DNA from: Ophelia neglecta
Taxonomy: Eukaryota
Assembly (NCBI GenBank): GCA_965285935.1
Contig: OZ260664.1
Location: 80,662,001 to 80,726,000, forward strand
Direction of reading: 5' to 3'
Length of the DNA: 64,000 bases
The position numbers and the translations under genes were made by a program. The notes under the pieces are model-generated. The model searched no databases and was not told where the DNA came from. It worked only from the letters and a program-made list of their open reading frames with translations. Positions 17,201-44,200 of this stretch are shown piece after piece (positions within the stretch are counted from its first letter, which is position 1; every line of letters starts with the position of its first letter).

Positions 17201-20200
17201 TTGTCTGAAGTTTAGTTTATACAATAAAAATATGTTGCTTTGAACAGCACTTGTTTGTTTGATGGAACAAAATGCATTTTTAATGGTTGTCACTCTACAT
17301 AACGATGTATTGTGGAGATTTAGCCGCCTGCAAGTGTATCAGGTTTATAATATCAGAATGTTTGCCTTTCCTTGATGGATATGTTAGTTAATGCTAGTTA
17401 TATATTTGTCCTAGTCACTAATCCATTTGCCCTGTGTCCATTTGGATGTCAATATTGAACAGATTTATTTCTGTTTAGTTGGTTTCAATGATATACGTAG
17501 CCAGGCTCTTTTGTGTTAGACATTTTCTGGGAGAGGACTTGTGTTCTAACTTCTAACATAGGGGATTGCTTTTGAATTTGAAGTTTTCTTTGAAGATTCA
17601 GTAATAATCAGGACATTGGGCACTGCCGTGAGTACTAAATACTGGGACCACCACAATAAACCACACCTGTTCTCTGCTGTATATTTGAAGTTGGTCAAAT
17701 TAAAATTTGAAAGAGACAAGAAATATATTAGAGTGTACGTCAGCTGGAACCACAAAGCAGAGAGGTGTTAAAACTAATTAGATATTTGTGGCTGAAAGGT
17801 TTGTCTGCCAAACACAGTAGTTTTTTTAGATAATAAGTCATCCTCTACCATTGTGATGTTGTGATAGTTTTGTTCTATAGTAATTATTTTCCGTCCCCAT
17901 TTGTATTTTCTCTGACATAAGTGGTGTTTTTTCCCCCGTGGTTGACGAGAGCTCGTGTTGAAGACAGTCACTTGCCCTTTCATTCTCTCTGATGTCAGAG
18001 TCATCCTAATGTGATCAGTTGTGTCATCACTTGTGCTTTTTATACCTCAATTTGTTATTTGATAACCTATCATTACAGCTGAACCTTGGAGAGAGCTAGA
18101 TGTTATTATGTGCTATTTTTCTTTCTAGCTGTCAAGCCTAAGCAGCTAGCTGAGAGTGACTCGGACCTATACCTGAGTGATGGTACCATGATGGCCGACT
18201 CAGAAGTAGACAGAGAAGAAACAGACAGGTAAACTTTGATGTTAAACATCAGTCAGTATCCAAGTTTTATTGTGTTAAGGTTTGGCCTGTATTTAACTAC
18301 ACATTACAATCGGTTACCATGTTCCTGAGTTTGACATTGTCTTGTTTTGTTCAGGGAGGAGGTGGTGACAGACAAAGAATGTGAGGAGACCAGTGGCACA
18401 GAGAGCCAGCAGGACGAGGAGAGGGATCTGCGAGGGGAGGCAGACAGCAGTGAAGAGAGCGGCAATGAGGTGGTGACAGTAGAGGATCTCAGGGTAAGAA
18501 GAGAAACTTAGATAAGGGGGGGGGGGGGGGGAAAAATTGAAAAATTTGGTAGCTGTATCCACAGGTGTGGTATATAGGCCTGGGAAATTTGTTTTAGATG
18601 GGAGGCGCTTCACTAGTGACCATACTACCTCCCCTTCAGCAATATCATGACAGGATTGCACAAAAAGGGTCTGAGCTATGGGTCTGAAATTGACAGGGAG
18701 GAATCATTATAGGCATAACATGAACTCATTTACTTTTTGAGTTTTACTTTACTTTAATTTCCATAGTAATGCAAAATAAAAGGGTGCAATCTTCAAAAAA
18801 AAGTCAAAACTTTTTGCTTTCTCACCATTTTGACCAATTTCCAGTGTTTGGAGGAAAAAAAATTCGGGGGGGGGGGGGGGGTTGGGGCAGGGTCTTGGTC
18901 TTGGCGCGATCTGTTAATAGTTTGTGAACTTTTTTTGTTTGCTTTTCTTGCCATTTCATGCAATTTCCAATGTTTTAAGCAAATATGGGGGTTGGTGGGG
19001 GGGGGGGGGGTCTGCATCTTGGTGCGATTGGCAGATTTTAGGCAATTTTGCTTTTCTCATCTTTTCTCGCCATTTCAGTGTTCCGAGCAAAATACTATTT
19101 TTAGGGGGTATGGGACCCACTCTTGCTTTGACTTTTCCAGGAGTGGTTTGGTTGGCAACAGACATATTAATTCTTCCTTTTATTTGGTGGGGGTTCCTAA
19201 ACCCCTTGTTAAAGTTGATTATCTTCATGGAGTTGCCATTGGTATAATTCTCCTGAACTTTGTTTTATAGGCCACGACTCCGCGGCAGGAGCTAGATGAG
19301 AGTGTGAGATCTCAAGAACCGACAGGGGATACTCCTGAAGGCTACCTGGTAGACCTGCCTTCAGCTGACCCCCAAGTCTCCCTGGAAGCCAAGCTGAGTG
19401 AGGCTGACATTGTTAGAGTCTTGGATTTTACACATGTCGAGCCAGATGACAATATGACCCTTCACAATCAAAACGAGGACATAGTTCCTGTGAAAGAAAG
19501 AGAAGCAGAACCTACAAATAAGCCTGTGGAAAAGAATGAACCCCCAGCTACCAATGTTACTGATAGTCAGGACTTGGAGGAAGGAGAGTTCAAGATTAAA
19601 ATGGAACAGCAGGAAAGTCCAAAAGAAGTCTCAAAGGAGGAAGATTGTAGGAAAGACTCTGAAAAGCAGGCCCATAAGTTGTCCACTGCCAAGAAGACTT
19701 CAAAACCAATTTCTAGAAAAGCTGACCTATCATCAGAAAAGACTGATGTAAAGAAGAAGGCAGAGACAGCAAAAAGAACTAATTCAAAAAATACTTCAAC
19801 CCGGATTGTTGATTTCATTAAAAAGCCCCAGGTGGCCAAGACTAAGGATGAAATTGAAAATTCAGAAGCAGTGAAGAACCCTAAACTTACGAAAAATGCA
19901 ACCAACCGTAAGATGTCAAATTCAAGCCTTGAGAAATCTCCCACTAAAACAGCCGTTGATAAGCTGTCTAAACTCTCCAGTCCTCGAGATGCTAAAATGT
20001 CCAAGGGCAAACTGGAGATCAGTAGTAACCAACGTACAGTAGAGGTCAGGCCAGTCATAGTGCAACTCACCAGGCCGGCAGCAGTCAAACGCCACCCTCC
20101 GAAAAGTAAATGGGAAAACATAATGTCACAGATTGACAACAACAAAGAGAAACCCAAACCCGAGGCAGCTAAGCCCAACCGGCCTTCCTCCGCCAATAAC

Positions 20201-23200
20201 AAACCCGCCAGCACATCAGGGTCGTCTTCAGGAGCCATCGCCTCCAGACGCATCAGTTCAGGGAACGTGCCCACCAGCGCACCAGACAAACCCAAACGTA
20301 AATCTTCTATGCCTGCCCGGCTACTACCACCCAAATCGGTGATGATTAAAAGAGCGTCGCCTGAGCCATCGAGTCGGAAGAGTTCCTCCTCAGATGTGAG
20401 TGGGCAGGACCAGAGAACGTATGGTGTGCCGTTATCCAGGGGGAGACCAGCATCTGCATGTAAGTATGTTGCGCACTTGAAAATTGCCCGCTGAATGTTA
20501 CAATAAAAGAAGAAATAGTACTTGTTTGTGTAGCTTAAAATGCAACCTACTTGAAATTGTAAAAGTGCAATTTTAATTTGGTAATCATTTTGAACATGAT
20601 GGTGTTTTCACAGCGAGACCATCGAATCGCACAACCACAACCCTCAGGAAAGTTGACCGATCTTCAAGTGTGGGATCTGACTCGCAGGTAATATTTATAG
20701 ATGAATCTAGTCCAGATATTATGTAACTCAGATACCTACAGCACTACTAACAAAGTATCCAAAGTGACTTTCTCCAGCTAGAAATTAACTAAACGTAGGA
20801 AAAAAAGATAAGCGTAGTATTAATAATCTGAGGCAACCACCTGTTGGCTTAGTGACAGTGGAAGTAGTATTAATGTAAGAGGCCAGATAACAAGAACTAG
20901 ACCCATCTGCTAAAGTCTGCATGTAGTTGTGTTGAATACTACTGCTGTATTAATTTTGCATGTTTCAGCCTATTGGAAGAACTTTGAATGTGAGTGGGGT
21001 GACTTAATGTTTGTTGATTTGTTAATTATGCAAAAATGTTTTGATATAATATTCTTTTAACCCTTTATCTCCTAGATGGTCCCTCAATTATAGTAGATCT
21101 CAGATAAATGGTTAATGCAATCAAGTTTTGTTGTAAAGCATGTTTGTTGGTACTTAGTTAAATTTCAGAAAAATTGAATTGTTTATATCACATTTAATTG
21201 GTATGTTTTCACCATAAGTTATTTTATTACATTCCAGATGATTTTATATGATTTAATTTTGATAATTAATTGTTGCACTTTTCAAAGTTATACACCATGC
21301 CCACACAGCTTACTTGATGTTCAGTAATACTGTTTGATGATGATCAGTTTTCATATGAATGTTTTTTTTACTAAGTTTGCTTTTTGTCAGTAGTATGTGT
21401 GGCTTATGCTTTCCTTTTGCCTGTTTTGTTGTGTTATAGGAGAGTTCAGCCTCCGATTCCAGTATATCACAGGTTTCTATGGTTTCTCAGGGATCTCTGA
21501 GCAATCGGTCGCCCCAACAGGGTACCCCTCGTCAGTCTACCCCAGAGCCCAAACGCAGCATAGCCAAGAGGAAGTCTCTCATTGAGCCTCCCAGAACCTC
21601 CGTCTCCAAGATAGGTAAGGAATAATCCATCAATAGGAAATAAACATCCTCTAGTGGGGCATGGCAAAAAGATAATTCTCATTGAACATTCGAAAAACTC
21701 TATCTCCCAGGCAGATGAGGAATAAGCTAACAAAAATTAAGTTAAATGTCCTCCTTAATATCCCTCCTGTAGAAAGAAAAGCCCATCAGTATATATATGG
21801 CTGGTAACTGGAGTCAAAGTCCACAAATATTAAATTTTGAAATCATTCCTTTGAATACTCCCAGTTTAGCAAAAACTCCTGCCTCACATTAATCAACTCC
21901 ATTTTCAACTTGTCTTACAGGGGTATCTTTTAAATTTGTATCTTTTCGGAAAGGGAGGCATCACTTGTTTTTTTAGAGAAATTGTTGGTGAATTCCTATA
22001 CATATTTCTGCTGTAGATCTGTAGCATTGCGCATTGTGTAGAGTTGCCAGTAGGGAGGCCACCTATCAGGAATGTTCTGTACTTACACTGAAGTGCTTGT
22101 CAGTTTTTGTATAGAAGATACCACAGACAATTTCTGAACCCTGGAGTAAAAAACATTGTTTTTCAATGCCTGTGTCTGTTATTTGAATTCAAAATAGTAT
22201 CCTACCCTACATACGTATTATTAAAGGTGTAATGATGTATATAAGGATGTAGTTTTGTGTTTTGATCCAGAGCCAAGAAGATCGAGTTTAGTAGCTCCAG
22301 GGTCCAGTCGTATGGCCCTGGCTAAGTCACCAAGGACACCAGGCTCCCAAGCAGCCAGCCCAGCCAAGAAACCTTCCCTTACCAAAGGTCAGTGTATCCA
22401 GCTTGTCTCTGGCACACAGTCAACCTACATCCCACTGCTCTCCATCATCCATCTTACTCCCAGGGACAAACAGAAAGCTGTGTGGATTCTCTGCCACATG
22501 GATCATATACAGTGGCATAATATTGTATAATTTAATGCCTAGTGTACTTGCAGTTTTGTTTGAAAATAAAAAACAATTAGTGCAAGAAAAAGTTAATTTA
22601 GGAAATATATTTGGGAAAGAGATAGGAGCAGAAATATCTTGAGTAAGAAGGTATTTATGTTGGAGAGCATTTGGAGGTTAACTTTGTGCCAGTGTACATG
22701 ACAAATTCTGGGAGTATGGTGAATATAACCAGCAGATATCAAGCATTGCTATCCATCTATCATATTGGTGGTTGGGGACCCAAATGTTTTTGGCTTGTAC
22801 CCCTAGGGCTTTGGCAAGAGGGTTAATTGAGGGGACATTTTTTCTTATCTAAGTCAGCATTACATTGCATGATGAAAGAGGCACTTTCCTGGTGGTGAAA
22901 AACTAGCATTTACAGCCGATACTGAACTATGTGGTATGTGGGGAGGGTTAGATTTACCAGATCCTCAGGTCACCGGAGCATCCCCTCCAAACGCCAGTCA
23001 CCAATGACAGACATCATAATTGGAATAGTCAACAAATGCTGGGCCGGCTGAGGCTGCTGAGGCACGTGTTGTGGAATGCCTCAGGGAGCAAGCAGGTATG
23101 GTCGTCTGCGGTCTTCATCTGTCCTTGACGGTCTGAGTTTTACTGAGCCCTGATCTAAGGCTAGTCTGCCACAGTCCTGAGTTTTATAAGATCTAAGTTT

Positions 23201-26200
23201 ACCAGACAGAGTTGAGAGTTGATGGCTAAGAACAGACATGGCTTATTAATCCCAGATGGGAATTTCCAGTGGAAAACTCCACATGCTTTTTAGAGTGAGC
23301 TCTGTTTTAAGGCTTTTAATCAGCCTATTAAATTAGCTTGTCACATAGTAAATTGTATATTTATTTGCACATGAGAGGAATGTGAGGTACTCTACTTTTT
23401 ATGAAGAAAAAAGAAAAAGCCACAAACTACAGTTATTTAACCCCAAACAGATTTGCATAGTTAATAGTATGATCAGACATATGTTTATGTGCACCATTTT
23501 TTGCCCAACTCCAGATGGCATAAATAGCGCCACAGAACATATATTTCCATCCCCCATATAGCTGTTTTGATCTGTCCAGAATGTATACATAAACATACTC
23601 CATTATGCTATTGAGTAGATTTCCAGACACTGGCAGTATCAGTATGCATGTAAATGGTTTTCTTTATGTAGTGAAGGTGATGCTGGGGATACCCTGTAGA
23701 AATGTCCATGTGCCACAGTGGCTGCCAGTGGCCGGGTTTATAGGCTGTGGCAGGCTTGATATCCTCAACTTTGTCATAGGTTATCAGGAGTTGTGATATT
23801 AGATCCTCTGCGTAATGTAGAAGTGTAGACCTGTTTCACTCACCCTAAACAAACCAAGGCTGCAAATTGAGAAAAATAGCAGAAAAACACCTGTAATTTC
23901 ACCCACCATTGCTGTCGATTTATGTATTGAGGTTATCAGCATGTGTTTGACTTGATAACTATCTGGCAGTGTAGAATGTCAAAAAGAAGTGTATTCACAA
24001 ATGCTACTACAGTTTAATATGCTATATGTTTTAGATTTAGAATTTATTTTTCCTGTAATAGCTTAGGAAAAGCAAAAAAATACAAGCTTGTGAAATAAAG
24101 TGCATCCCTGGTTTAAATTGTGGCATGCGGTGCTGTTTTTATAAACATGTACTTGGGCTTATTAAAGTGATTTATTTAGGCACACACCCATACTTATGAT
24201 TTATTTGTTGTTTAACGGTTGATACAATTATACCATTAAGGTGGAAAATGGTTTTGTCAGTGTTTTCTGTGCAATTATAGTTGGCCATGTTTTCTCTACC
24301 CTATGGCAATGCTTGTAAATTGTTGGCAGCAAAAATGACCATTTTAGTGAGAGTTGGCCTCCTGGTTGTATATGATAGATTGGAGCCAATGATAAAGATT
24401 GTCACACTTGATGAGCTCCAAACACAACTAATACACTCAGGTATGTCTTCAGGGGTTTATTGGCAATATTAGTGCCAAGGACACCACTCACTTGGCTAAC
24501 TATATAAGTAAAAAAAAAGTTGACAGGCAACCAAACCACTCAAAGAATATAGAAAGTCAGAGTTTTTGTTACTTCCACCATACAGAGTAACTATATACAG
24601 CAGGTAAATGCCAGCATGCAAACCATGCTACGAGCTGCAAAAAACAACCAATTCCACTGGTACTCTGTCTAAATCCTGAAGCAACGCTTTAACATAATTT
24701 ATTTTGTATGCCGATGGGATGTCTTCATCGGCCAGTTAGGGCTGATTAGTGAACTCAGCGGACTGATTAAAGAACTCAGTGTATTTTCCTGGCATTTACG
24801 TCTGTTGGCGGGCAATTAGAGCAGGCACTTCACAATGCACTGGTTGTTGAATCAGAAACCGTGTGAGATAGGTGATGATACACAGTGAGAGGGATGGAGC
24901 CATACTCCGGCTACAAACACCACTTCAGCTGTGAATATTTGTCAACAGCCAGTACCAGGAGAGCAGTGCTCAATGCTGGCCTGCGCTGCATGTTTGACAC
25001 AGCAGAATAGCAGGATTACCAATCACTGGTGTGGGCGTCTGGGATGGAAAGTACTTACTGCAGTCTCGGGGTATGAGGCTCTGACTTGGAGACTGACAGG
25101 AGCCTAGACAGAAGATGTGTCTAACCAGAAATGTCAGAAGTGGCCATACACTAGACTGGAAACTACAGCCTCCAACACAGTAATAATACTAGTGTTATGT
25201 TCTATATGAACCTGATTGTGATTATCTAGACGTAGTCCAGACACAGGAAGGGTGAGCACTCAAGGACTCAGCTATCCACCATTAAAAACAAATAATCAGA
25301 TGGACTGCAAAATATACTCTGAACCACCGATTGTAGAAAGTGATTTTTTTGTGTTGGTTCGGGGCAAAATTGTGACTCAAACTGATCGATAAAGTAAGCC
25401 GTGGCTTGTTGTGGAAAAAACAGTTGCTCAAATCCAGTATCAGCAGTCTGCCTGAATTCAAACATGCTTTCGGCTGGCAGAGCCGTCCGTGAGGTTGTGG
25501 CCAGTGGCATGCAGTAGGCACCTGACTATAAACCAGTACTTTGTAAAGGACGCCTTTAAATGTATGAGATACCTGGAAGACTGATCAAAAACACTTGACC
25601 CTGTCAACTCCTGGTTCCTCTGAGTGATCATCACTACACTGAGTTATACCTACCTCACACAGACACCAGGACCCTGTACCTATATGTCAAGGTGGAGTAT
25701 TCAACTGGATTTAGATATGGATCTAAACCAAAGTTTGTCCCATAATAATCCTGGTGACATCGCCCTGGATTTGGAGACGGTAGATGATCTGGGGTTTGCT
25801 GAGGTGTTTGCCCATCTGTCACAAGCCAGTCGAATGCTTCTGGAGGAAATCGAAGGTAATCAATTCTACTGGTGTTTTCTTTGTGGTATCAAGTGTAACA
25901 TCATCATTAACAATTATGTTGAAGTGTTTTCATTTCTAACAGCCTGGAGCAGTTTTTTCCTCAAGACCAATGCTACCTTTAGGAATTGATTTGGTAATTT
26001 GAATTTTTTCCGCATAAACATTGACACTGAGCATAGACGTATTATTGTCAAAGCACCCTGACTGCTCATATGTTATCTTTTAACTACAATTTTATGTTTT
26101 TATGTGCCTCTTTTAAAGTCTGTATTAAGAGGGCAAAAAATGATATGAGTAAACTGAGGTGATGTACTTTTACCAGGGGCTGTGCCACATAGACTGTATT

Positions 26201-29200
26201 ACCGTATTTGTTAAGAGGGGTTTTCTTCATAGCAGTATCACATAAAATTTATGGCATTTGTCAATGAGATTAATAACTGCCCTCTATGTGTACTGGTTGG
26301 TTACTGGCATATTAGCCCTGGAATGCATTTACAAAACCCTAAGAAGTATCCAGGAGATGAGGGTTAAAGGTCATACACCGATGCCTCATCTGCCCTAAGG
26401 AGATGTATCCCACCGTTCTTTGAGGAGATTCATGTTTTTTGAGGAGATTCGTGTTCTTTGAGCTGAATCTTGTTCTATAAAATGTTTCTTTCCTGGTAAT
26501 TGAGTCCTGTCTCAGACTGTCTGATGTAACTTTCTGTCCAGCATTTCCTGTAATTGAGTAATGGCAACTGCTGCCAGCTGAGATTTCCGCCACTTACATC
26601 TTGAGAAAAAACCTCATTCTTACTTCCATAGCAATGCTCCAAATAGAAAGGAAGGAATTTAATATAAATCTTAACGGAAAAAAGACAAAGCATCTCTATT
26701 CTAGGTTACATTCAATGGCAAGAGGGAGATCTGCTGGCAAAGAGAAGGCAAAGGATTGGATATAAATCACAGGCAACAAGGCAAAAAGTCTCTAGTCCTG
26801 GGTTAAATTTAATGGCAGGAATGTGTTTCCCCGGCATTTATTTATTGGCGTGAACGTAGACTGCGTTAACCATCCCTGCGTGTCAGTGATCAAGTATTTT
26901 TAGTTTGCCAATCAATTTTTAATTGAGTATTGTAGTCAGTGTAAACTATGCTGGGAATAAGAATTCAGTGTTTTTGGTGATTATCTTAGCTTAATAAAAA
27001 TTAAATGGTATTATTGCCACGGAGTAGCACATTTGTAGTGAAATGTGTCTCGGTATTCTAGGTGATGAGTGAGCCAGCTATGATATATACTGGTACTGAC
27101 AACTTTTGATTTGATTTCCTGGGCCACATTGATCCTCAGTTAGATTGTAAACTGGGCTTGGATTTCAGGTCTGCTTTTATTTCCTAAAGCTCTTAAACAC
27201 AACATCCAGCCAACAAATTGTAGCAGACAGTTTGCTTGTAAATTAGATGAATTATTGTAGGCTGGGTTGTCAATTTAAATTGGTAGTTTTGAAAAAGATA
27301 GCACAAGAAAAGTTAAATTTTGTTTACTAATTAAATATAGGTATCAACTGCACTAGTACCAACCAATGTCATTTTGTTACTAGTTTGTTTGTTCTATTCA
27401 CCATTAAACTATTGTGTATGTCAGAGCAGTATTAATCATACAGCCTTAATCTATGTACCTCCAAACATGTACCTCTCCATTACTTGGTAGCCAAACTGAC
27501 TTTTCTCGATCCTGTATTGAGCTACTTACCCTGCTCACAGTGGCAGTACACGAGGTACATGTTATAGCCGGTGATCTTAGCAGGTAACCTGTTGCCGTCT
27601 GTAAGCAGGGTACCATCTACTATAAGCCGATGGATGTCAAACTGATTGGAAGTAACAACATTTAGTTAGCCCCATGACTCACATGGAAAGTATGTCCAGC
27701 ATGTCTTTGTATCTGACTAATTATTGATTACTTTAACAGGCGTTTCCCCGGAAATTCTAGGAAGAGACTTATAGGTATCCCAGCATGCTCTCTGATCTAG
27801 CCCTGACATATAACTAGCCACAGCTGTGCCTTCCTGGAGTTGACTTACAGCGGCACATTGGTCATCAAACGCAACATTTTAAAATCTGTTGCCCATTAGT
27901 TAGTTACTTGTAATCTAGCTGAGAAAAGTAAAATGATAGGAGGTATCTTTTGGAGACTTTGAAGTGTTTTTGACGGCCGTCTGCATGTGTCCACTCACAC
28001 CTGGCAGATCAGGTTTCCTGCTTGATTTTCTTGTGTGTTTTTTATCAATCTGTCATACTTTATGATCATGAACAAAGTGTTACATTTAATTTGCAAGAAC
28101 TCTAAAAAGACAGCTGTGCCTTGCTGCATGTAACAAACTTTGACATCAAGAAAGGCTATGCATGTATATGTACATGGATATAACTTAAGTAACCTGTTAT
28201 TAGATTGCAATCTCATTTAAGTCACTCATTATTCCATTTGAGGCATTGTGGTAAACTTTATGCTGGTTTGCTTCTACCTACAGCATAATATGATTGGATA
28301 ACTTGGCTAGATGTTGATTGCAGGTTCCTAATTAATATGTTTGACGTAGCATGCCAACCCTTAAACACTTCTTGTTGTCAGGATTTGATAATTCGTTGGT
28401 TTACACATGGAGGCATTCTGGTATTTTACAAACTCTAAATTTTATTCTTGGGATATGAGTGAAATAGTCAGTTATAAAGTTGCGATCCATTTTCTTCTGC
28501 TGGTGATAATGTGGAAATTTCTTGCCTGTGGTTTATCGAAAAGTCACACAAACGGTATGTATTGTTCTATGTGTTATGGATCATATAGATATCTTTTTCT
28601 GCAGGGAACATATGGAGGAAAATGTAAAACAGTCTCATGTTTTCACCAAGTTTCTGAAGTTTGTACAATTTGAAGAACTAACTTCCTTTGACTAGGTTGA
28701 AAGCTGCCTGGATACACCTCCTTGGTACACTGCCCTAACTCAGTGTACCTGTGGCACACATGCCAGTCGTTAGCTCATGTGGCTCTAATATCTGGTGTTC
28801 ATCGAGAGCTTTCTGCTGTCAAACTTCGGTAGGTTTAATAAGCCACCATCTCTGAACATCAACATCTATGGCGCTGTACTGTCTGATTCATTTCAAAGAC
28901 CTCAAAATTACCTAAAAATACACCTGGAATATTGTCTTTTATATTTGCAAATCCAGTAATTATCAAAGTGGAAAATTCAAATTTTAATTGGAAATTTATT
29001 GGTAGCAATTGAAAAATTCAGCCTTAATCATATATCTTTTAGGAAATATCTGTGCACTGGTGTTAATCAAAAATAATTATATTGAATGATTTAATAAATC
29101 AACTTGAGGTATTAAGGTTAGTGGGTTTCTTATCTATGTGAGTTGTCCATGTAAAGAGGGTCATATATTGTATTAGCTGGGATATCATAATCCCAGGTGT

Positions 29201-32200
29201 GAGGTTAGCCGGCCCAGCCTGAGGCTTATCTACTGTACCTGGAGTGAGGGAAAAACCAACAACATAAAACTGTATAGTGCTTGACAAAGCATGGGAACAC
29301 TCAAATATTAATAATAGTTAAACCTTGATAAAGTACAGTACATTAGTTAATACATGTACACTTACCTCTACAAGTAAAACTGGCATATTCTTGTGTTTTC
29401 AGATGTGTCACGGAGAAAAATTTATACACAGGTTTTTTCCTGTTATTATTAGGTCTTAGGTCTACAACCTTGAAGTGTGTCTTTTTTTTTACCAGAAGCG
29501 TGAATGTTTTTTATCAATTTTAGTGCAGACTGTTTTATTTCTCTGTACATCTGGATCAAAATGATAATTTTAAGCAGACTATGTGCATGTATGCATGTTT
29601 CTAGTTAGTTCAATGTGGCAGGCAGTCGTGCTCAATTTCATTGAGGATATGGAAGTTTTTATCAAAGATTGCAACTTGTTTGTACTTTTTATACTTAGAT
29701 AAACTAAGCTATTTTTATATAGTTTTCAGATGGTCCCTGTTAGTACAAATTATTGTAGTGAACCAGATCACCACATCTCTATTTTAGACTCTGTGTAATT
29801 TACTTTCATCCCTCCCCCCTTCTCCCTTCCCCCTCCCAAAGTGTGCAGAGTCACCACACCCCCAGTCCAAGGTTTGATATAAGGGCACTATGGTGTGTTG
29901 AGGTGAAGCGTGTTGAGGTTGACCGGTAGCCAGTCTGGAGACTGAGTAGTTCCTGGCATGACTCCACCCTAACTCTATGAGACTGGGGAGGACTGCTACG
30001 ATGAGAGGGGCCCTGTGGTAGCCAATCAGAGTAGTTCCCGACACCTCCTTATCCCCCCCCCTCTTCCCCTTTGAGACTTGGGTGGACTGGTATGTTGAGA
30101 CGGGCCCTGTGGTGACCAGCCAGGGGCCCTGATGTGCTCCTGCTGGAGTGCTCCACAGTGCAGGTTCCAGGATCACATCTGTGCTCTATCTAACTGTTTT
30201 GCTTCAACATGTGTTACATAGGTAAGCATGTGCAACGAACTCCCAGCACACACTATAGAGCTATAAAACACATCAAACCGTGAGTGTATATGGCCGCAGG
30301 TCCAGTTTGGCTTTGTCAACTAAAGCATGCAGTCATGGAATGCTCTGTTACCAGGATATAATCATGATAATTAGCCAGATATATTTATTCCTCAGTGGAA
30401 TGCTACAAACCTATCAATTCTAGACTATCTGATCAGCACGGCAAGTCAATTTATTTATAGTGAATGAGTGGAGGAAAATTATTCCATTTATTACCAGTGA
30501 GAAAACCAGGATTTATAGTATCGAGTTTGGGGAAAATTGTGATACACTGCAAACAATAGTGATATGATTTTCTCATCGCTTAACATTCATACATTTGTGT
30601 TCAGGATCTGTGCATTTTCAACATATTGTTTCAGGTTGGATCAATTTATCTTGGCAGGTTGTACTTTTTACTGTGCCTAGTGTTGCATGGAAACATCAGT
30701 AGTTCCATGCTGATGTGTGAGGCTTGATGGGAAATAGGTAGACTGCTATAGGAGCATCTAAAACACTGAGTGTCGAAAACTGAAAAATGTACTGGTGATT
30801 GTGGCCAATTAATAGGAAGACTGGCTGGGATGTATGGTGACCAGTCTGGCAATTTTCTGTCAAAATCTCTGTAAAGGTCCTTTGTATAAGGTTTAAGTGT
30901 AGATGTCTGTAGAAATAACATCCATGCTACTGGGATTGTGGTAGTTACAATAAGGGGAATCTGATGGCCGAACATTGACAATAGGAGCTTGCCGTGTGAA
31001 CTCACAGGGAAAATTATAGCCCATGGTAGGATCATAGTGTAAGGGATATACCAATAGACTGGTGGATCGTTGATGTATGTGTTACATTTGTAAACAGTCT
31101 GACATGAAGTGAAGACAGTGTTAAAACTGTGTACCATTTGGTATATTTTGACATATCCAATGTATGTCCGAGACACATTACACTGTGGGGTCAGCAGTTT
31201 TTTTCACTCCGCCGTGAAAACATTTTGTCTGTTGATCAATGATCATTGATAGATGGCCAGGGCGTTATTCACAGGCCGTAGAAAGCTAGTCAGATCATAT
31301 TTATAATGTATGCTTGGTTGATTTAGTACAAATATATATATTATTAGTGTAATTTAGATATATTTAACACATAAAGGCATGTTCATGTTTTAAAAGGGGT
31401 AAAGTTCTCCTATACATGGATGAAGTTTACACATCATATGGACATTCCTGTCATAGTGCCTGACGACCTCTGGGATTATAGGTGGTCCTGTCAGCAGTAA
31501 ACCATATCACCTTTCAGCAGAAAAGTGCGGAAAATTGGCCTTAATAGTATGTTAAACTGCAGATCCCGCTATATGTCTCTGTTCTGAAGGAGTTTTTGAG
31601 GAGTGAGTTATTTAGTAATGTAAACATTAAGCTGAGCAGGAGTGATTAGCCATTGAGCAGTAGGGATTAAATCATGGAGAAAGTCACACAGGAAGCATAT
31701 CACTTCAACAAGTACCAAATGAAAACTTAACTCTCCAAATTACATGTACTTGTGTCTTGAGACGCTACAAGGGTCAAAGGTCATTCTAGAACAAGTAAAC
31801 TAAAGGTGGATTATATCTACTTGTAGTTTTACCCTGTGAGATGCTGGCACCACATCTTCTATGGGACTGGAATGTACACTATATATTCACCGGCTGATAT
31901 ATCATGAAGCTGAACATGGAGTACATGTATTCTAAGCCAACAAATTGGCATGTTTTTTCCCTGTGAATACCACAAGTTTTCTTGACTTTGTTTTGACTTG
32001 GGAGTGGTTCAACTCAGCAGACCAGCGATGATCACTCAGCGGTACGGGACCAGCGAGTTACTCATGGATTGGTTTTACCAATTCTAAATCTGGATAAAGT
32101 CAGAACAACATAGCAACAGACAACAAGGATATTGTTAGTCAGTAAAAGTCAAAATCTATCCTCCAATGCCCAAAAGTATCAAATATTGATAAACACACAC

Positions 32201-35200
32201 AGTAGCCATTATTAGATTTGGATCACAGGCTGTCACACAATAAGCTGGGGAGTAAAGTGTGAAATCTATAATTTAGTGTGTTAGTCAACATCTGATTGGT
32301 CATTTACATTCACCAGCAGAGTTATGTATTACATAGGGAAGTGAATATGATGTATAATGATGTACTATTGGGTTCTTAGCCATGCAGAACCTATCGAGGC
32401 ACCATGCCTGATATGTGACAGGTGATTCTGATTTGTTTTCATGATAAATTGGCTCTTAAGATGTGTTTAGGATGAAGAAAGTTGAAAATACGCTTACCAC
32501 TTTGCGATTTGCCCCCACATCCTGGGAGGAAACTGCAGAATTTCAATTTGATCACAAGATCATCAAAGATACTAGTGATTTAAAAACAAAATTGGATAAA
32601 TTTTGACTGGAGTTCCTCCAAGGCTCCTATATAAGACAGTGTTGCTTAGCAACATATTCATAAAAAGCAGGTGTTCTGCACTTGACCGCTAGATTAAGAT
32701 ATACATGTACTTCACAATCGTTGGATACTTGTAAATAAGTGTGGATTCCTGTTCAGACAAGATGTACACACAACTGAAGAAGATATCTCTCCCTGAGATC
32801 AAATTGAAATTAGCATTGAAAGGAGTACAAAGGCGATTCCAATATTGTGTTCTAGGTGGCAAGGTGAAAGGTAAGCATCCAAACTATTTTGATTATTTGG
32901 ATTCTTTCAAATATCAACATTATTTATCATTAAAAAGACATTCACTAAGGCTAGTGGCTGTCAATTGGTCTTTACTAGTGATTGTGTTATTATTTATCAT
33001 TTATTCCAACAGCACTGTTCTGAACCTTTTTTTCTTCAGATTCACTTACAAATTTTATTCAGACCAATAGACTCAAAATTTGCATAATTTACGATTGTCT
33101 TTCAATATGATTAGTAAAATGAAAAATTGAAGAAAAAAAATTCGACCAGAAAATCAGTCCAGTGGGGATCCCATGCCTTTACACAATGCAATGTCGTGAT
33201 GTGGTTAGTAGATATGATGGCAGATACATGTATTTATAACACAACAAGCACGTGATGCCTGGCCCTAAACAGAAAACAGACCATAAGAACAAAGTGCAGG
33301 GAACTTCCTCATTTTCTTGTGCAAAAATATGAGATTTGTTTTTGGGAACAAGTCAGTTGATAATTGTCCCACAAACATACATTTACAGTATATACCTGTA
33401 TTGTGAATGGGAGATAGTGTCATAATTAATGTAAATTTTCAACAATTTTCAACTTGAACAAGTTACTTTAAGTGGCCTGAGAAGCTCATTGTCCCATAAA
33501 CAGTTCATATTGATGTTAGTGGGAGAATGACCATCATGACTATATAGAGATGACTTCTGTCCTAACTCTTATCTCACAGTTTTATTCTTTTGGCATGGGA
33601 AAAGTACGGTCATAGGATGGTCCTTTCCCCAAAGAACGTTGTCTAACTAAATGTGTTCTGTTTGTACAGCGATTCCTGGTAAATCTAAGTAGTATTTAAG
33701 TTTTCTTGACTTAGTCTTATTTATGATAAAAATGAATCTAGTCAGTCTGGGCAGCATGGGCTGTATACTGCTTGGAGAAAAGAGTGAATATCTTTATTTT
33801 TTACTGGGTCAGCAGTTCATATATGGCATTTCCTTCTCAGAACTTCACAAGCAGAGGGTGTAGTTGTATACATACTGGTTATATACATAACATACATTGT
33901 ATACATACTGTGTTAATGCTGATACTGAAGGGTGTGAACTTGTTATCAGGACCAAGTCAATTACTCACAGGAATTACATATACACTGTACATACATGTAT
34001 ATTAAAGTAGTCAGCAGTTCCTGTCATGGAAATCATGCTTTCACCAATCCACTCAATATAATTTCAAGGATGTAGATTCAAAGGTCCAATCCTTTGTCCG
34101 ATTCCGATATACCACCGATCAATTCAATCATTCAAGCAGCCAGTAATTGTCAGTTTGCACAATGCCTTGTGAGACAGCTGTCATCCTCAGATATACATGT
34201 TTGTGTACATCCCACACAGCTGGCTGTAGCATGGCTGTTCAGGGGGCTCCAGATCTTCTCATCTCTTTTATAATGTATATAATAATAATAATAATAATCA
34301 TCATTTTATTCAAGAACATAGATATTGCTACAGAGATATTACATAAATATAAAGAAAATGACACCGAGAAGCAGACTCTGCTTATATGGGACTCTGTAAG
34401 AAAAAAATGAACATACTGTTTACAAACCATGGCAGACAGGATTTAACTACTATAAAAATTATCATCATTATCAGTGATTGAGTTCATGGCCATACTGTAT
34501 TCATATTGAAGGACTGAAAGGAGTGAATTCAAATTTAAAGAAAACAGCCTTGAGTTCAACATTGGCAGGCTCACTGTTCTGTGAATGAAATCACTTTATT
34601 AAACTGACAAGAATTATTTATTCATTGTATATTTTTTTTGACTTTGTAATTGAAAGAGTATGACTCACGGTAGATTTGACAATTGATAGTTTTGAAGGCC
34701 CTGACATATGTCTTGTAGCATGAAGTTGGCATTTTGCTTCCAACATGCGATGGTTTAGCTGATAATAAAGGTAGTGGCTCCCCATTGATTTGCTCCCTGT
34801 CTAGTTATATTGAATCACCTTGGAGGCTCTTGAACCATTGTCCCAGATTTCTCATGGCTGATGTATACATCAGCAAGGTATTGTAGAATTAAAGTCCCAT
34901 GTAATGTCTTGAGGCCCTTGGCTGTAAGTCTTCTTAGGGTCTTGGAGGCAGATATGGGGATGGATAGCTTGTGTAGGTTTTTGTGACTGAACATGGATAA
35001 TTGTGACTGTGTGATATACCTGGGCCTTTAGCTTGTAATTAGCAGGAATGTTATCAGCAGTTTAGGAACATGGATCTAAAGCTGTCAGTTTTTTCCTTCA
35101 AGTTTTATCTGTGACTATCCAGAGAACAATAATGGTGACATACCGGTATCTGAGAGGGGATCTGACTGTGAGTCTCAACACAACATGTTCAAATACTAAA

Positions 35201-38200
35201 AATCCTCTAGGTACCTTATTCTTAGACGACAGATTTGCCATGCTACCAAGCTAGGTAGGACATTTGGCTTTGATCCTAAGGGTCAATTTCACACCTGGAT
35301 CTGGTTTTATTGAGAAGGTAAAAACCTGAACTTGCAAGTTAACTGTTGTTAAGTGCAAGATGTTGGTATAAAAAAGAAGCTGTCATTAAAGGCGAGAATG
35401 TTACTGGATGTGAAATGATAGTGGAGACTTGCCCATGAAATTGCTGTGATTGTTCATACCCAGCTGCTAACAGACAGTGGAGAAAGACTGTAAAAGATGA
35501 TTGTTTTCCTATCAAAACTCATTTGTCAGTTTCTTTAAATATAGAAACATAGATAAGAGAATGACTTAAGAAATGGGCTCGCAGTTAAGTTCCCTGTTTA
35601 GGAGAAAGGAGGATGATGTTGTGGAGGTTTCTTGTTCAGAGAGTGGCCCTGAGGCTGATGGGTTTGTGGAGTGTGAGGAGACCAGCCATGATGACTGTCT
35701 TGTGTCCTGGGAGTCCCTACTCAGGCAGGGCTACAGGGATAGTCTGGCTGAAGACACCAGTGCGGGCCAGGAAGGAAGCACTGAGGGCTACCGGGATAGT
35801 CTGGCTGAAGACAGCAGTGCTGGCCAGGATGAAGGCACTCAGTCTGAGTCTAGTATGTCTTTTTCTGTGGATTCTCTGGCAGATAACTGTGACATTAAGC
35901 GAGACACTTGGCCATCGCCTTTGGCTCCGTGTCAGCTTCCAGAGCTGGTAACTTCCAACTGGAGCTCTTCTCAGCTTCACACTGGTAAGACTTCAAACTT
36001 CATTCTGTATTACCAGGGTAGATCATCTTCACACTGGTTATACTTTAAAGTTCATTTTGTATTAGATCATCTTCACACTGGTTATACTTCAAACTTCATT
36101 CTGTATTACCAGGGTAGATCATCTTCACACTGGTTATAGTTTAAAGTTCATTTTGTATTAGATCATCTTCTCAATGTTTAGACTTCAAAATTCATTCTGT
36201 ATTAGATCATCTTCACACTGGTTATACTTCAAACTTCATTCTGTATTACCCGGGTAGATCATCTTCACACTGGTTATACTTTAAAGTTCATTTTGTATTA
36301 GATCATCTTCTCAATGTTAAGACTTCAAAATTCATTCTGTATTAGATCATTTTCACACTGGTAAGACTTCAAACTTCATTCTGTATTACCAGGGTAGATC
36401 ATCTTCACACTGGTAATACTTTAAAGTTCATTTTGTATTAGATCATCTTCACACTGGTTATACTTGAAACTTCAGTCTGTATTACCAGGGTAGATCATCT
36501 TCACACTGGTTATACTTTAAAGTTCATTTTGTATTAGATCATCTTCTCAATGTTTAGACTTCAAAATTCATTCTGTATTAGATCATCTTCACACTGGTTA
36601 TACTTCAAACTTCATTCTGTATTACCAGGGTAGATCATCTTCACACTGGTTATACTTTAAAGTTCATTTTGTATTAGATCATCTTCTCAATGTTAAGACT
36701 TCAAAATTCATTCTGTATTAGATCATCTTCACACTGGTAAGACTTCAAACTTCATTCTGTATTACCAGGGTAGATCATCTTCACACTGGTAATACTTTAA
36801 AGTTCATTTTGTATTAGATCATCTTGACACTGGTTATACTTCAAACTTCATTCTGTATTACCAGGGTAGATCATCTTCACACTGGTTATACTTTAAAGTT
36901 CATTTTGTATTAGATCATCTTCTCAATGTTTAGACTTCAAAATTCATTCTGTATTAGATCATCTTCACACTGGTTATACTTCAAACTTCATTCTGTATTA
37001 CCAGGGTAGATCATCTTCACACTGGTTATACTTTAAAGTTCATTTTGTATTAGATCATCTTCTCAATGTTAAGACTTCAAAATTCATTCTGTATTAGATC
37101 ATCTTCACACTGGTAAGACTTCAAACTTCATTCTGTATTTCCAGGGTAGATCATCTTCAAACTGGTTATACTTTAAAGTTCATTTTGTATTAGATCATCT
37201 TCTCAATGTTAAGACTTCAAAATTCATTCTGTATTAGATCATCTTCACACTGGTTATACTTCAAACTTCATTCTGTATTACCAGGGTAGATCATCTTCAC
37301 ACTGGTTATACTTTAAAGTTCATTTTGTATTAGATCATCTTCACACTGGTTATACTTCAAACTTCATTCTGTATTACCAGGGTAGATCATCTTCACACTG
37401 GTTATAGTTTAAAGTTCATTTTGTATTAGATCATCTTCTCAATGTTTAGACTTCAAAATTCATTCTGTATTAGATCATCTTCACACTGGTTATACTTCAA
37501 ACTTCATTCTGTATTTCCAGGGTAGATCATCTTCAAACTGGTTATACTTTAAAGTTCATTTTGTATTAGATCATCTTCTCAATGTTAAGACTTCAAAATT
37601 CATTCTGTATTAGATCATCTTCACACTGGTTATACTTCAAACTTCATTCTGTATTACCAGGGTAGATCATCTTCACACTGGTTATACTTCAAACTTCATT
37701 CTGTATTACCAGGGTAGATCATCTTCACACTGGTTATACTTTAAAGTTCATTTTGTATTAGATCATCTTCTCAATGTTTAGACTTCAAAATTCATTCTGT
37801 ATTAGATCATCTTCACACTGGTTATACTTCAAACTTCATTCTGTATTTCCAGGGTAGATCATCTTCACACTGGTTATACTTTAAAGTTCATTTTGTATTA
37901 GATCATCTTCTCAATGTTAAGACTTCAAAATTCATTCTGTATTAAATCAACTTCACACTGGTTATACTTCAAACTTCATTCTGTATTACCAGGGTAGATC
38001 ATCTTCACACTGGTTATACTTTAAAGTTCATTTTGTATTAGATCATCTTCACACTGGTTATACTTGAAACTTCAGTCTGTATTACCAGGGTAGATCATCT
38101 TCACACTGGTTATACTTCAAAATTCATTCTGTATTAGATCAACTTCACACTGGTTATACTTCAAACTTCATTCTGTATTACCAGGGTAGATCATCTTCAC

Positions 38201-41200
38201 ACTGGTTATACTTTAAAGTTCATTTTCTATTAGATCATCTTCTCAATGTTAAGACTTCAAAATTCATTCTGTATTAGATCATCTTCACACTGGTTAGACT
38301 TCAAACTTCCTTCTTTATTTAGATCATTTTCACACTGGTAATACGTCAAACTTCATTTTGTATTGGAGTGATGTTCCAGTGAAGGGTTTAATTGTTTTCA
38401 ATTCCTGGCAGTTGCCTTACAGCGTGTTATGTGTTATTGGAATTTGACTGTGTACAGCTCTTATAAAGCAGGCTGTAAGCTCACCTAATATTTGTTTATC
38501 TGTGTGGCTCGTGTAATGATCTGATTGACTGGGTTGGCATGATCCAATATTTTTCAAAGTTTGATTTAGACATGTGCTGCATATTACCATGACCCATTGA
38601 ATGATCCATAGATTTGTGTTAGGGGTTCCAGGGCTATATCTAAACAGGTACACTGTGCTTATCTAAGAACGGCCATGTTTTAATAGATATTGTGAATTTA
38701 ATTCAGGTAATCCTGTTCAGTTCTTCTTTAAAGTTACCAAAATGATGCGATACAAGGAAGCTAAGATTTGAAGGGTTTAAACGCAATAAGCTAATTAATT
38801 GCCAATTTCTCTAGATATACACAATGGCTTAATCAGTATTGGCTGGGTCATTTACTGGGCTGTTTTTCTACCCCCTCCCCCAACTCGTGACTGGTGTTCA
38901 AACTATATTAACTGGGTGTCTATCAACACCACTACATCTCAAGGTAGCTTTGTAAGGGTCCATGGAAGAGAAACAGAATCAGGCACTATTTCACATGTCA
39001 CATAAACTATGCATGGCATTGACTTTTTCAAATGCAATAAAATGAATTCATTGCTTTGAGCAATTTGCATGATAATGAAAAACTGCACAGACACTTTGAA
39101 AAGCCCACCAGCAACCAGTTGGTAATTGCCTTTAAGTTTTCAGGACCCCATTTTCTCACACAAGTAGACTCCAAGGAATGACAGTCTCATCGCACCTATT
39201 ACAATCTCTTTTAAACTGTACACTCTATTAAAATATAATTGGCAGACCCAGGGAAAGGTGGAAATAAGGGTTTCCCAGTCTTTTTTAAACTGCATTGTGC
39301 ACATAAAAATAGAATGCACTAATATTTCATAGAGCTAGTCAGGTGGCAGATGTATTGGAATGTATATGTCTTAAACTAATGGTACAAATTTTGTAACCAG
39401 TCATTATGTATATATTTAGAATGAGGTTTTCTTTGATTTTGAGCTGCGTTTATGTTTTTTATCAAACCTGTTTTTAATATGAAATATATATATATACATA
39501 TAGAATCTGTGCCATACTTGAGTGTTAGCTATGCCAAGCCAGGTGCACCTGTTTCACTCCTGGATGTAAATCATATTGGTACTAGAATCACTAAGTCAAA
39601 AACCTGATGATATTTGTAGTGGTCTGCCAGCATGCACAGAGCAGAGCACAGAGCAGACGGCTGAAAACACAAGGCACTTCTACCGAGCTAAGAATCAATG
39701 ATACAGCACAGCCATTGAGGCTGAAAAAATAAACAATACTGACCAAAAGCAGGAGGGCCAATGTGTTTTATGCTCCTTATATTGTTATCTTATCTTGATT
39801 CTACTACCTACAGGCTAGCTGATAAATCTTCCTGAACAGTTTAAGGTGCATGGCTTTCCAAGTCTTGCGTGGCTGCTCAAGTCTTCCGTCAGACCTGTCA
39901 CATGGCAGACCGGTCACACGCTCTGTCAGAACAGGTTTAACAGATTACATTTAGTGATTGAGGATTATGGTGGCCTGATGGCAGTTAAGGGAGACATAGG
40001 TAATACAATAGCAAAGAGCGCCTCATTGGCAGTTCAAGAGTTGTGGAGTGAACCAAGCGTGACCTCAACCACCAAGATACAGCATGTTGTGGGTTTACTG
40101 GGCCTTGGCAGGTCTCTGTATCAAAAAGACCGTTTACCAGCTCTCAGCCCCCACACACCTACAGGGTGTCTACCACAGTCCAGGCACACACACTCTCTAC
40201 CACACAGCGCAATGAGCTGCTCTCTGGCCAAGGGCTGGATGAACCCCCCAGACCTGCTACAGCTAAGGGACCCTGAGTCCCTGCAGGGACCCCAGGGAGT
40301 TGGTGGAGTACATCTCTGGGGCATGACCCCCTGGCATGGGTACAAAGAATTCAGGGAGGACTTGGTGGGAAAGTGTAGTCGATTCATTAGTGATTATGTA
40401 TTCAGCCATCATTCAGGTGAGCAGGTTTATGTCAGTCTTATAGATATTGATGGAACAATATGTTTTTTTAAATATAAAATCTACATTTAATAGAAGCAAT
40501 GCCCCTGGTATGCTTGACACATTCAGGAATTACCAGATCTGAATAATGCAGACATGAGAATTTTCCACGGATTCGCGGATTTCCGAGTTTTTTGCCCCCC
40601 TTTGAAACCCCCCGGCACGCCCCTGGCATGCCCATGCCTCGGCTGGCATTTTAAGAGTTTTTCAAAGTTTCCCATTCTCATTCCTGATAATACTATGAAT
40701 AGAATGAGAACAAAAGGAGATTTGCTTTCCAAATCCTTCAATATGTGTTCAAACTTTGTAATTATACACACAGTTGAATATTAACATTGAATTATTCGAA
40801 ATAAGTCTTGGAATCCTTATTCTTTGTTCCTGAAGTGCAATTTACAGACCTGCCTTTTGACCTAATCAGGCTGCAATTTGAATTAAATATTTCCTAGGGT
40901 CCTTAAGGGGATCTGTTGTTTCAGAGTCAGGAATGAGGATTTGATTAAGCTGGTAATATGATAATATAAATCAATGGATTAGTCCTACCTGACCTAACAG
41001 GTTGTTCTGCCTGGTGTTGGATTACACACCACAAATATGAAATGTACTAGTCTATTTAAACGTTGTATACACAGTTGGTTGTGAATAACACTAAAACTTA
41101 GGATATTAAGTACAAACTCTGCTGTAATATATAGTATATAAATAAGGTACTATCAAAAGTATTAACACACAACACAATTCTTGATTGCACCAGCCACCAC

Positions 41201-44200
41201 CTTTTTTTTACAATTTCAGTACCGGCCGTAATTCAGTTTAAATGGCTGAAAAAAGTAGAAATTTTATGCCCACTGCAAAGGTTAGAAAAGTGTTTCACAT
41301 AAGCCATCCCTGAAAGTGGTTACCGAATCTGGTGGGTGGTCACTGAGTATGGTTAGCCGCCGGTGGTAACTGAGTCCTGTGGGTGGACACTAAGTATGGT
41401 CAGCCACCAGTGGTTACTGAGTCCTGTGGGTGGTCACTGAGTGTGGTCAGTCTCCGGTAGTCACTGAGTCCTGTGGGGGGTCACTGAGTATGGTAAGACA
41501 TCATTGGTTACTGAGTCCTGTGGGTGGTCACTGAGTATGGTCCATGGTCACTGAGTGGGGCTCATGATATGGTCGGCCATTGGTGGTGTCTGAGTATGGA
41601 TGGGTAAGGTTGGTGGCAAAGGTTCTAACATCAGTCTGCATGGTCTGTGCTAAAGGCTTCAGCAGCATGGGTTGAAATAAACCTATATCAGTCTGTGAAA
41701 TGCTCAAGGGGTGTCATTATCAAATAATAGTCCCACTGAGAAATGAGGGGTCTAAATTTCAGTTTGTTTGGGAAAATATAGATTCTGGCAGACGCACAAA
41801 AAACTGTGTAATAGATGTTGTTTCTCTGGCTATCTGTCAATGACATGGCCACTGAAGCAGGAGAATTTGGAGGGAAGGATGCCCTGCAGTGTTATAATAT
41901 AGATGTTTAAATTGTGTCTCTTTGTATTTAATACTCAGGCTTTGTTGTTTGGATAACTACAAGTAGTCTCCTTCACTGGGCTGGAAAGACTAAATAATAA
42001 TTAGAGGGTATCAGTTCTCTGGCAATAGATGAATTGCATGTGAACATGGAATGCTTGACTTTAACTTTTAGGTAGATGACTTTATCAAATAAATTGAATG
42101 CTTGGGTTTAGTTACTGGTCAATTAAGGTAAATATGTCTACCAGTAAATGGCAACTCTGACATGAGGAAGTATTTTGCTGAGGCCAAAATCCTGTCACTG
42201 GTTCCAATGGTCCCTTGACCTGACAATAGTCATTATATTTACATCATATTCAACCTGAAAATGACCAATAGACCTAACTTTATTTAAACATGTATATTTT
42301 ACAGACCAGACAAGAAATAAGGCAGGAAGGCCCAGCAAGAACCACCTGAAACACACCAACCAACCGGATCTAGTCAGCAATGCCATCGACAGCTCCCAGG
42401 CTTCGGAGGAGATCTCCCGTCTGGAGGCCCTGTGTGAGTCTCGCACCAAGGAACTCAACTATATCAAGCTGCAGCTGAAACAGAAGAACACCGGCTTCGA
42501 GGCCATGGCCATCCTGGTCAAATACCTCACGCAGGAGGTGAGCATGGCTGCGTTTACATCTCAGACCCTGTGGCAATAAATATTAACACTTACCTCAAAA
42601 CTGTTAGGTAAACGGTACAAAATATTAGCCCTTTCTGATTTAAAGTCTAAAGGCATATGTTTGAGAAATGTCACAGACAATGTTAGGCTAGAATAGAAGC
42701 AAAATAGGTATTTTTGTTCATGTTTCTAAAGCAAAGTGATAAAAATATGCAGAAAGAGCAGGAATCTATGGTAGACATCTTGCTGTAGATATAGACTGTA
42801 GATAAACCACATGACATGTGGTAAATGGTGGTAGTGTATAGGATTTCTTGGATTACAACATGAGTTTTATCAAATTTAAGGCGATACTAGTTCTAAACCA
42901 ATGAATGTCCCAAATGCTAAGTTTGTACCAGCTTTAGTAAGTTGTTCAGTAAAACGTTCTAACTTTATGGTTGTTATTAAACATCAACTTGTTTGTAATA
43001 TATGTATATCTATACCCCCTGTGTGAGCAGTCAATGAAACAGCCATGAATAATTATCTGTGAGCAGTATCTCCTTTGATCTGCGGCCTTTTTTTTTACAT
43101 ACAAAATGTTGATTTAGAAGAAAACATATTCACTATGCTGGGGTAAAATCAATATTTCTTTGTAGTATAACCCAGTTGAAGTTTCTCAGATGAAAATTAA
43201 ATGTCCTGAAATTTACCTTTGAGTCACCAAACAGATTCAACACCACAACAAGCTTTAATGTAGTAAAGCTGCTAGTTTTTGTCTGCTTTTTTCAAAATAT
43301 GTCATTAGACTGGATTAACGAGTTGAAAATATTGACTTAATGGCGTGTATGAGAAGTGATTTTCTAGATATATAATAAAAACCTTGACTGTTTACCCATG
43401 TTTTCAGCTGGATGCCTTCTCCTGTCCTGTAGTAACAGCCCAGCTTCAAGAAACCAAGGAGCAGCTGGTTAAAGCCAAACAACACTTAGGTATGTAAAGT
43501 ACTACCTCAAAATCAAACCGTTTTCAAAGTCCTTGGCGGTATTTTTTCAATAGTTTTGCTGTTCCTGTGCAACTATTCAAGCATTCTGTCCTTAGCTGCC
43601 CTTATCCTGACTGTAGATGAATGATATCTTGAGTGTGCCATTTTGCAAACGACAGGAAATTGCCTCTAGATTGTGATGAATTTTATACTAAACATCACGA
43701 CTGGTATTTACAAGCATTTTTCTCCCATAGAATCTCATCAAAATCACTTTATACACATAAAGCAAATAGAATTTATGTAAAAGATGTACACCTAGTTGGA
43801 TTACTGTCTGTTGGTGATAGTCAATTAGCAGATTTTACAGCTGGTCTCCACATTGTTATCAAGTGACAAATATTTGTGGTGAAAATTCCAGTATGATGAC
43901 AAAAAAAGTATATGCATTCCATGATAATCTATGGCTGGTGCTTGGACTGCACAGGTATGCCATTTAAAGTGAATGAACTTTACCTCTCATGCAGCATGAC
44001 TGGCAGTGGTCATCACTGACCAGCCCTGAGAACGGATTGTAAACTGACTTTAGTAAAAAAGAAATCATGATACTTTATTCTTATATCTTAATTTAATCAG
44101 TCTATCATTCATAGGACGATGAATTTTGTGTCCAGTTACATTTGGTATTTGGACAACTTTCTGAGTTTTTTTTTTAATCTAGAAGAGTACAATATGTGCA

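Follow-up and report, generated by a model that had tools for sequence, protein, structure and literature searches.

A candidate alternative first exon with a myristoylation-type start in the single MTUS-family gene of Ophelia neglecta

The plus strand of a 64,000-nucleotide stretch of Ophelia neglecta DNA (contig OZ260664.1, positions 80,662,001 to 80,726,000; hereafter the window, in whose own numbering all coordinates are given) carries one gene of the MTUS1/MTUS2/CCDC69 family, in an assembly of 762 Mb. An earlier note, made by inspection of the letters, had proposed that a long intron of this gene holds a cassette of at least five alternative first exons, each placing a different N-terminus on one coiled-coil core. 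The cassette as such was not supported, but one plausible leader came out of it: the segment 35573-35984, which has an exon-like codon score and a myristoylation-type motif and is most likely the only credible coding exon among the five. We tentatively favour reading this segment as an alternative first exon that gives a myristoylated short isoform, with a confidence somewhat below even.

The candidate leaders lie between two exons that are spliced together in a relative. Locus L004 (Logan run ERR550532) yields a transcript-derived protein, P0131, with 64-83% identity to the gene (tblastn/tblastx); at the nucleotide level the identity to the species of that run is 80% in the core. The L004 transcript is collinear with 20141-20455, 20613-20711, 21443-21610 and 22267-22383 and then continues directly from 42304 onward (tblastx). 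Because this transcript joins the flanking exons, it confirms the intron, 19.9 kb long, and its acceptor at 42305. The acceptor needs one upstream base, that is, a donor in phase 1. The exon before the intron, the intron, the candidate leaders and the first core exon are as follows, with splice sites marked by a slash.

22271-22387, plus strand: last exon before the intron, ending AAG/GTCAGT in phase 1
22388-42304, plus strand: 19.9-kb intron holding the candidate leaders, its flanking exons joined in the L004 transcript
25684-25855, plus strand: leader 1, 57 codons, acidic, with a weak coding signal and a weak donor, AAG/GTAATC
28407-28554, plus strand: leader 2, 49 codons, hydrophobic, donor ACG/GTATGT
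32762-32870, plus strand: leader 3, 36 codons, basic, good donor AAG/GTAAGC, no coding signal
35573-35984, plus strand: leader 4, 137 codons, acidic, starting MGSQLSS, phase-1 donor CTG/GTAAGA
39978-40416, plus strand: leader 5, proposed as 40212-40416 with an earlier in-frame ATG at 39978; GC-rich, best donor (CAG/GTGAGC), codon usage worse than its composition predicts
24287-24440, plus strand: a sixth candidate of like form to the five, phase-1 donor CAG/GTATGT, intron-like codon score
42305-42537, plus strand: first exon of the common core, with the phase-1 acceptor ttttacag/AC CAG ACA, starting (D)QTRNK at the conserved DQNRNK junction

The mechanics of the proposal were borne out by direct reading: each of the five segments has an ATG, an open frame, a length of 3n+1 and a GT, their lengths in order (172, 148, 109, 412 and 205 nt) each leaving one base before the GT. 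This match of phase and open frame alone is weak evidence, because the intron 22388-42304 holds 32 distinct GTR phase-1 donors preceded by an ATG-initiated open reading frame (ORF) of at least 100 nt. We therefore give the counts by class. Donors were scored with a generic 5' splice-site matrix, with the other strands and phases as controls; the chance expectation for each strand and phase class came from 35 kb of other non-coding window sequence, P values are Poisson, and the thresholds for length and donor score were picked after the data had been seen.

Minimum 100 nt, donor score at least 2: plus strand phase 1, 7; other five classes 2, 2, 3, 4 and 4; expected 1.9; P 0.003
Minimum 100 nt, donor score at least 4: plus strand phase 1, 4; other five classes 0, 0, 1, 1 and 0; expected 0.85; P 0.011
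Minimum 60 nt, donor score at least 2: plus strand phase 1, 7; other five classes 8, 4, 6, 7 and 5; expected 4.75; P 0.2

The sense-strand excess in phase 1 at 100 nt and above is suggestive. The seven candidates include 24287-24440 and 27453-27570, neither of which was among the five first listed; chance would account for about two of the seven. Each of the five segments is present in the genome once, and a repeat origin for them was rejected. Repeats do occur in the intron, at 34276-34407 and 40543-40696, each with dozens of genome-wide copies that are 83-96% identical; the latter is SINE-like (short interspersed nuclear element) and lies just downstream of 40212-40416.

Codon usage separates the segments more sharply. 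We trained a codon log-odds model on about 1,550 codons from those exons of the gene that homology confirms, with intronic triplets as the contrast, and expressed each score also as z relative to random open sequence of matched composition. True exons scored 0.37-0.62 bits per codon and five long open intronic segments -0.18 to -0.40.

35573-35984: 0.44 bits per codon, z 3.35, a score reached by 0 of 5,000 random sequences
25684-25855: 0.18 bits per codon, z 1.48, higher than any of 64 length-matched intronic ATG-ORFs
28407-28554: -0.40 bits per codon, z -0.46, GC content 0.35
32762-32870: -0.07 bits per codon, z -0.15
40212-40416: -0.03 bits per codon, z -1.24, or -1.45 if started at 39978
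24287-24440: -0.12 bits per codon, z 0.31

An exon-like codon signature is thus present in 35573-35984, weak in 25684-25855 and absent from the other three of the five. The claim that this one locus encodes the whole repertoire of family N-termini fails on those three, and 28407-28554, 32762-32870 and 40212-40416, together with 24287-24440, are probably chance pairings of an open frame with a GT. Two of them had been given specific identities. The supposed transmembrane leader, 28407-28554, reads like AT-rich intron in both GC content and codon score and is most likely a chance ORF there; its hydrophobic stretch, VAIHFLLLVIMWKFLACGL, contains H and K and is not the unbroken hydrophobic run of about 20-24 residues between charges that an ATIP4-like membrane span would have. 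The supposed ATIP1-like leader, 32762-32870, does align from its methionine in near-identical register with 21 residues of fish ATIP1-type N-termini (P0117, P0118 and P0120), with 9/21 identities and 21.2 bits against P0117 and P0118. This score is tied by a minus-strand match at 31136-31095 and nearly reached by one at 34175-34261 (tblastn, within the window), and because matches elsewhere in the window score equally, the resemblance is at noise level.

The start of 35573-35984 is well placed for translation, with a stop codon directly upstream in frame, A at -3 and G at +4. Its label as myristoyl-like was apt at the level of the motif: MGSQLSS fits the pattern G-{EDRKHPFYW}-x(2)-[STAGCN]-{P} and is followed by RRK, a fit that by our estimate about 1% of random ATG-ORFs would show. 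The frame contains an in-frame duplication of 57 bp (35727-35839). A minisatellite on the plus strand (35971-38364) starts at the junction of the segment with its donor; only 4 of its approximately 36 units keep the donor CACACTG/GTAAGAC, at intervals of 376 bp, and the later three of these lie behind in-frame stops or do not match the phase of the ATG frame.

In the reading that we favour, 35573-35984 would be a protein-coding 5' exon with its own transcription start site, and its phase-1 donor would be spliced to the phase-1 acceptor at 42305. The product would be a short isoform of about 610-630 aa that includes the coiled-coil core, and its N-terminal glycine (MGSQLSS, then RRK) may be myristoylated and hold the core at a membrane in the manner of vertebrate CCDC69. 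According to PMC11621681, CCDC69 is anchored to the membrane by myristoylation of Gly2 and has no homologue in invertebrates. Like it, the predicted product would be a short MTUS-family coiled-coil protein beginning with MG; unlike in CCDC69, which is encoded by its own vertebrate gene and has a short N-terminus, the motif here heads an acidic leader of 137 residues within a single MTUS gene, and its lipidation is predicted.

Several results weigh against this reading. The codon model is small and was trained on the approximately 1,550 codons of one gene, the very MTUS gene under test, and therefore favours acidic, serine-rich sequence. Whether phase-1 candidates are in excess depends on the minimum length, the excess being gone at 60 nt, and a phase-1 donor is a one-in-three coincidence for any exon. 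No CpG island was found at any leader (observed/expected ratios of 0.1-0.5), nor a clear core promoter. Searches with the last exon, with P0041, the core-exon frame and a core alignment (word index) and with a 188-aa ORF (exact match) found none of this species' proteins in the searched collections, and blastp and tblastn in both directions against the retrieved kin gave only noise for a leader homologue in any relative, where the nearest kin with a known 5' end are about 45-60% identical in the core and the closer L004 shows the long form only. Finally, the nearest named clusters of 35573-35984 in the Atlas are UMAD1/UMA-domain proteins (0.87, 180-184 of 256 features), a result that we take up below.

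Some of the same observations would follow if no segment were used at all, all five being chance ORF-donor pairs and 35573-35984 a former exon or gene fragment in decay. Chance alone would give about two such pairs, and the intron has 32 looser ones; four of the five segments, the weakly scoring 25684-25855 counted among them, are without coding signal; and no leader is conserved in the relatives compared. Open segments of 140-220 codons occur elsewhere in the non-coding parts of the window, and the growth of a minisatellite from the donor of 35573-35984 suggests relaxed constraint. Against this, 35573-35984 combines exon-like codon usage, an intact frame of 137 codons and an intact donor with a good start context, and the sense-strand phase-1 excess also speaks against disuse throughout. 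We regard this explanation as rather unlikely. Elsewhere, a scan of metagenomes with 35573-35984 gave no match, and a scan with the core exon gave as its sole match a distant contig, L030, without that intron; Pfam and PDB searches with all leaders were blank (in a Pfam copy without PF28191).

The Atlas result raises another explanation, in which 35573-35984 is coding but is part of, or derived from, another gene that lies within the intron and is related to UMAD1, the small ESCRT-I subunit, so that the phase-1 fit to the MTUS core is coincidental. The first 50 residues alone again returned UMAD1 (0.78), although both Atlas scores are below 0.9 and hence leads only. Human UMAD1 has the order FFRK...EADGFV...DVPFTLAP...WYDFTLE. 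Three short motifs of 35573-35984 occur in that same order: LFRRK (residues 8-12), EADGFV (27-32) and DTWPSPLAP (111-119). EADGFV is found 11 times in the genome, and the N-terminal context of 35573-35984 only at 35573-35984 itself; on the other side, acidic-DGFV motifs recur in unrelated proteins. The numbering of this human sequence agrees with the published UMAD1 mutants V89/P90/F91, Y125, F127 and E130 (PMC10445733), and the UMAD1 group is reportedly metazoan-wide with an N-terminal extension of its own (PMC2881412).

The UMA domain combines a VPF-type motif with a C-terminal Y-x-F..E in which the Glu is near-invariant (PMC10445733, PMC2881412), whereas 35573-35984 has SPL and WPS, no VPF and no YDFxLE half. 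Window scans found no fitting second exon downstream: FFDFELR at 39429 was rejected as AT-rich and in the wrong phase, and a DLPF... match at 40848 was rejected since about two such are expected by chance. The sole WYDFxLE site of the genome lies on another contig (C12:20929860-20929960, minus strand; L021, L026), in a terminal exon that has a phase-1 acceptor and reads (D)APFGNENEGGMQQMAWYDFLLESLLN up to its stop codon, in outline (D)APF...WYDFLLESLLN. This exon, distinct from MVB12 on C2, probably encodes the UMA domain of the UMAD1 orthologue. Neither the 5' exons of its gene nor an N-terminal exon like 35573-35984 were found within 230 kb upstream of it, and a 12-residue match to 35573-35984 adjoining it was rejected because it falls in its polypyrimidine tract. 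We regard this explanation, in which the segment is part of or derived from a UMAD1-like gene, as unlikely.

Given the Atlas and motif resemblance, 35573-35984 may be a fragment of, or captured from, a UMAD1-type gene. A combined scenario can be framed on this basis, in which a single invertebrate MTUS gene splits by promoter choice the roles that vertebrates split among paralogues, with a microtubule-end form carrying a CAP-Gly domain and a CCDC69-like myristoylated short form whose leader would be a captured UMAD1-type exon, its phase-1 'G' donor fitting both acceptors; G/AT at the C12 UMA exon and G/AC at the MTUS core both give Asp. We consider this combination quite improbable.

The full proposal of four or five genuine alternative first exons targeting one core to different cell sites is very unlikely: the phase-1 excess could accommodate as many as about five true first exons, none of the segments is repeated in the genome, relatives as a rule have leaders specific to their lineage and young exons may be without codon bias, but three of the five segments score like or below intron, the ATIP1 match is noise, the hydrophobic leader is AT-rich (GC 0.35), and the compared kin and the promoter scans showed neither leader conservation nor a promoter signal.

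Alternative promoters are known in the MTUS family of vertebrates, and short invertebrate isoforms are already in public data. Human MTUS1 is subject to alternative splicing and promoter use and its isoforms share a C-terminus of 395 aa, the membrane span of ATIP4 being an in-silico proposal only (PMC3566609); the facts on the human ATIP proteins cited in support of the cassette hold (PMC3566609, PMC11621681). The gene described here is like the human one, with its ATIP1, ATIP3 and ATIP4 products, in belonging to the same family (PF27558), the human gene having several 5' exons and promoters ahead of common 3' coiled-coil exons (PMC3566609). It differs in having one credible extra 5' exon, itself predicted, in having no leader homologous to that of ATIP1, and in a long isoform with a CAP-Gly domain.

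Among relatives, the sequence upstream of the conserved DQNRNK block differs between lineages. Other lophotrochozoan transcript contigs have short leaders that follow in-frame stops and are joined exactly at DQNRNK, and short isoforms with 5' exons of their own are therefore widespread outside vertebrates. A basic leader of about 25 aa, M..RRxRP...F[ED]KLFSRxD, is common to L007, L005 and L008/L009 (L005:49-123, L007:796-873, L008:85-165), and the leader of L006 begins MGACHGK after an in-frame stop (L006:213-260). A profile hidden Markov model of the shared leader of about 25 aa had no match in the window. What distinguishes the Ptychodera and Lingula isoforms examined is cassette exons or truncation rather than their first exons. 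The favoured short isoform would resemble these lophotrochozoan short isoforms, whose leaders of 16-170 aa end at DQNRNK (L005, L006, L007 and L008/L009; Batillaria/Nucella and Patella/Lottia models); unlike in the present proposal, several leaders in one species were not seen, and their leaders show no similarity to the five segments. With UMAD1 the likeness of 35573-35984 is one of Atlas features and motif order, and the difference the missing VPF and YDFxLE elements.

If 35573-35984 is used, one MTUS gene predating the duplications would give both microtubule-bound and membrane-anchored forms. A CCDC69-type function would then be older than the vertebrates; in a recent paper, no homologue of CCDC69 is reported from invertebrates (PMC11621681). 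The locus would also offer a simple system for how an N-terminal label redirects a microtubule regulator.

The assignment of the gene to the MTUS1/MTUS2/CCDC69 family, as first proposed, is supported. Similarity searches were run exon by exon. The last exon (51326-51746, ...ESKANKRLSMDNEELAWRL...QSDV and stop) retrieves 101 family proteins in a search of representative proteins, the C-terminal coiled coil has the ...ESKANKRLSM.NEEL... block of the family (PF27558), and the matches of a word-index search, from Lingula, Lineus, gastropods, scallop, Ptychodera and vertebrates, carry PF27558 and bear the names MTUS1 or MTUS2. Identity to the closest named kin is no more than 45-63%. The genome has one copy of the gene, and no paralogue was found. 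Its remaining parts are listed here.

1-2292, plus strand: part of the long isoform, a large 5' coding exon with 764 open codons, truncated by the start of the window
7542-7604 (approximate edges), plus strand: small conserved exon of the long isoform, 76-95% identical to the long isoforms of six species
19271-22387, plus strand: upstream exons of the long isoform, with homology blocks at about 19664-20455, 20613-20711 and 21443-21610 (tblastn, and tblastx to L004)
43408-43489, 45341-45499, 50276-50357, 50713-51029 and 51326-51746, plus strand: further core exons (tblastn/tblastx and splice-site reading)
About 46020-46100 and about 46308-46412, plus strand: core blocks with approximate edges (tblastn/tblastx)
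51744-51746, plus strand: stop codon, after the protein end QSDV

Two middle borders of the core exons did not phase by splice-site reading; in the relative's transcript the core is 476 aa. The first 66 residues of the 764-codon exon (about 4-198) are a CAP-Gly domain (Pfam PF01302, E=3.3e-22), and the same architecture of CAP-Gly plus MTUS is present in gene models of several gastropods and one sea cucumber (tblastn). To our knowledge, vertebrate MTUS1 and MTUS2 are without a CAP-Gly domain.

At the other end of the protein, the QSDV terminus (51732-51746) looks like a PDZ-ligand tail; an ending of the form [EQ]SD[VI] or ESTV recurs in many lophotrochozoan homologues and is not seen in the fish ones inspected. 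The CpG observed/expected ratio is 0.29 over all 64 kb, in introns as in exons, and no CpG island is present. Beyond the stop codon, a unit of 53 bp is repeated about 23 times at 55904-57118 (and again at 55334-55547), in the 3' untranslated region or just past the gene.

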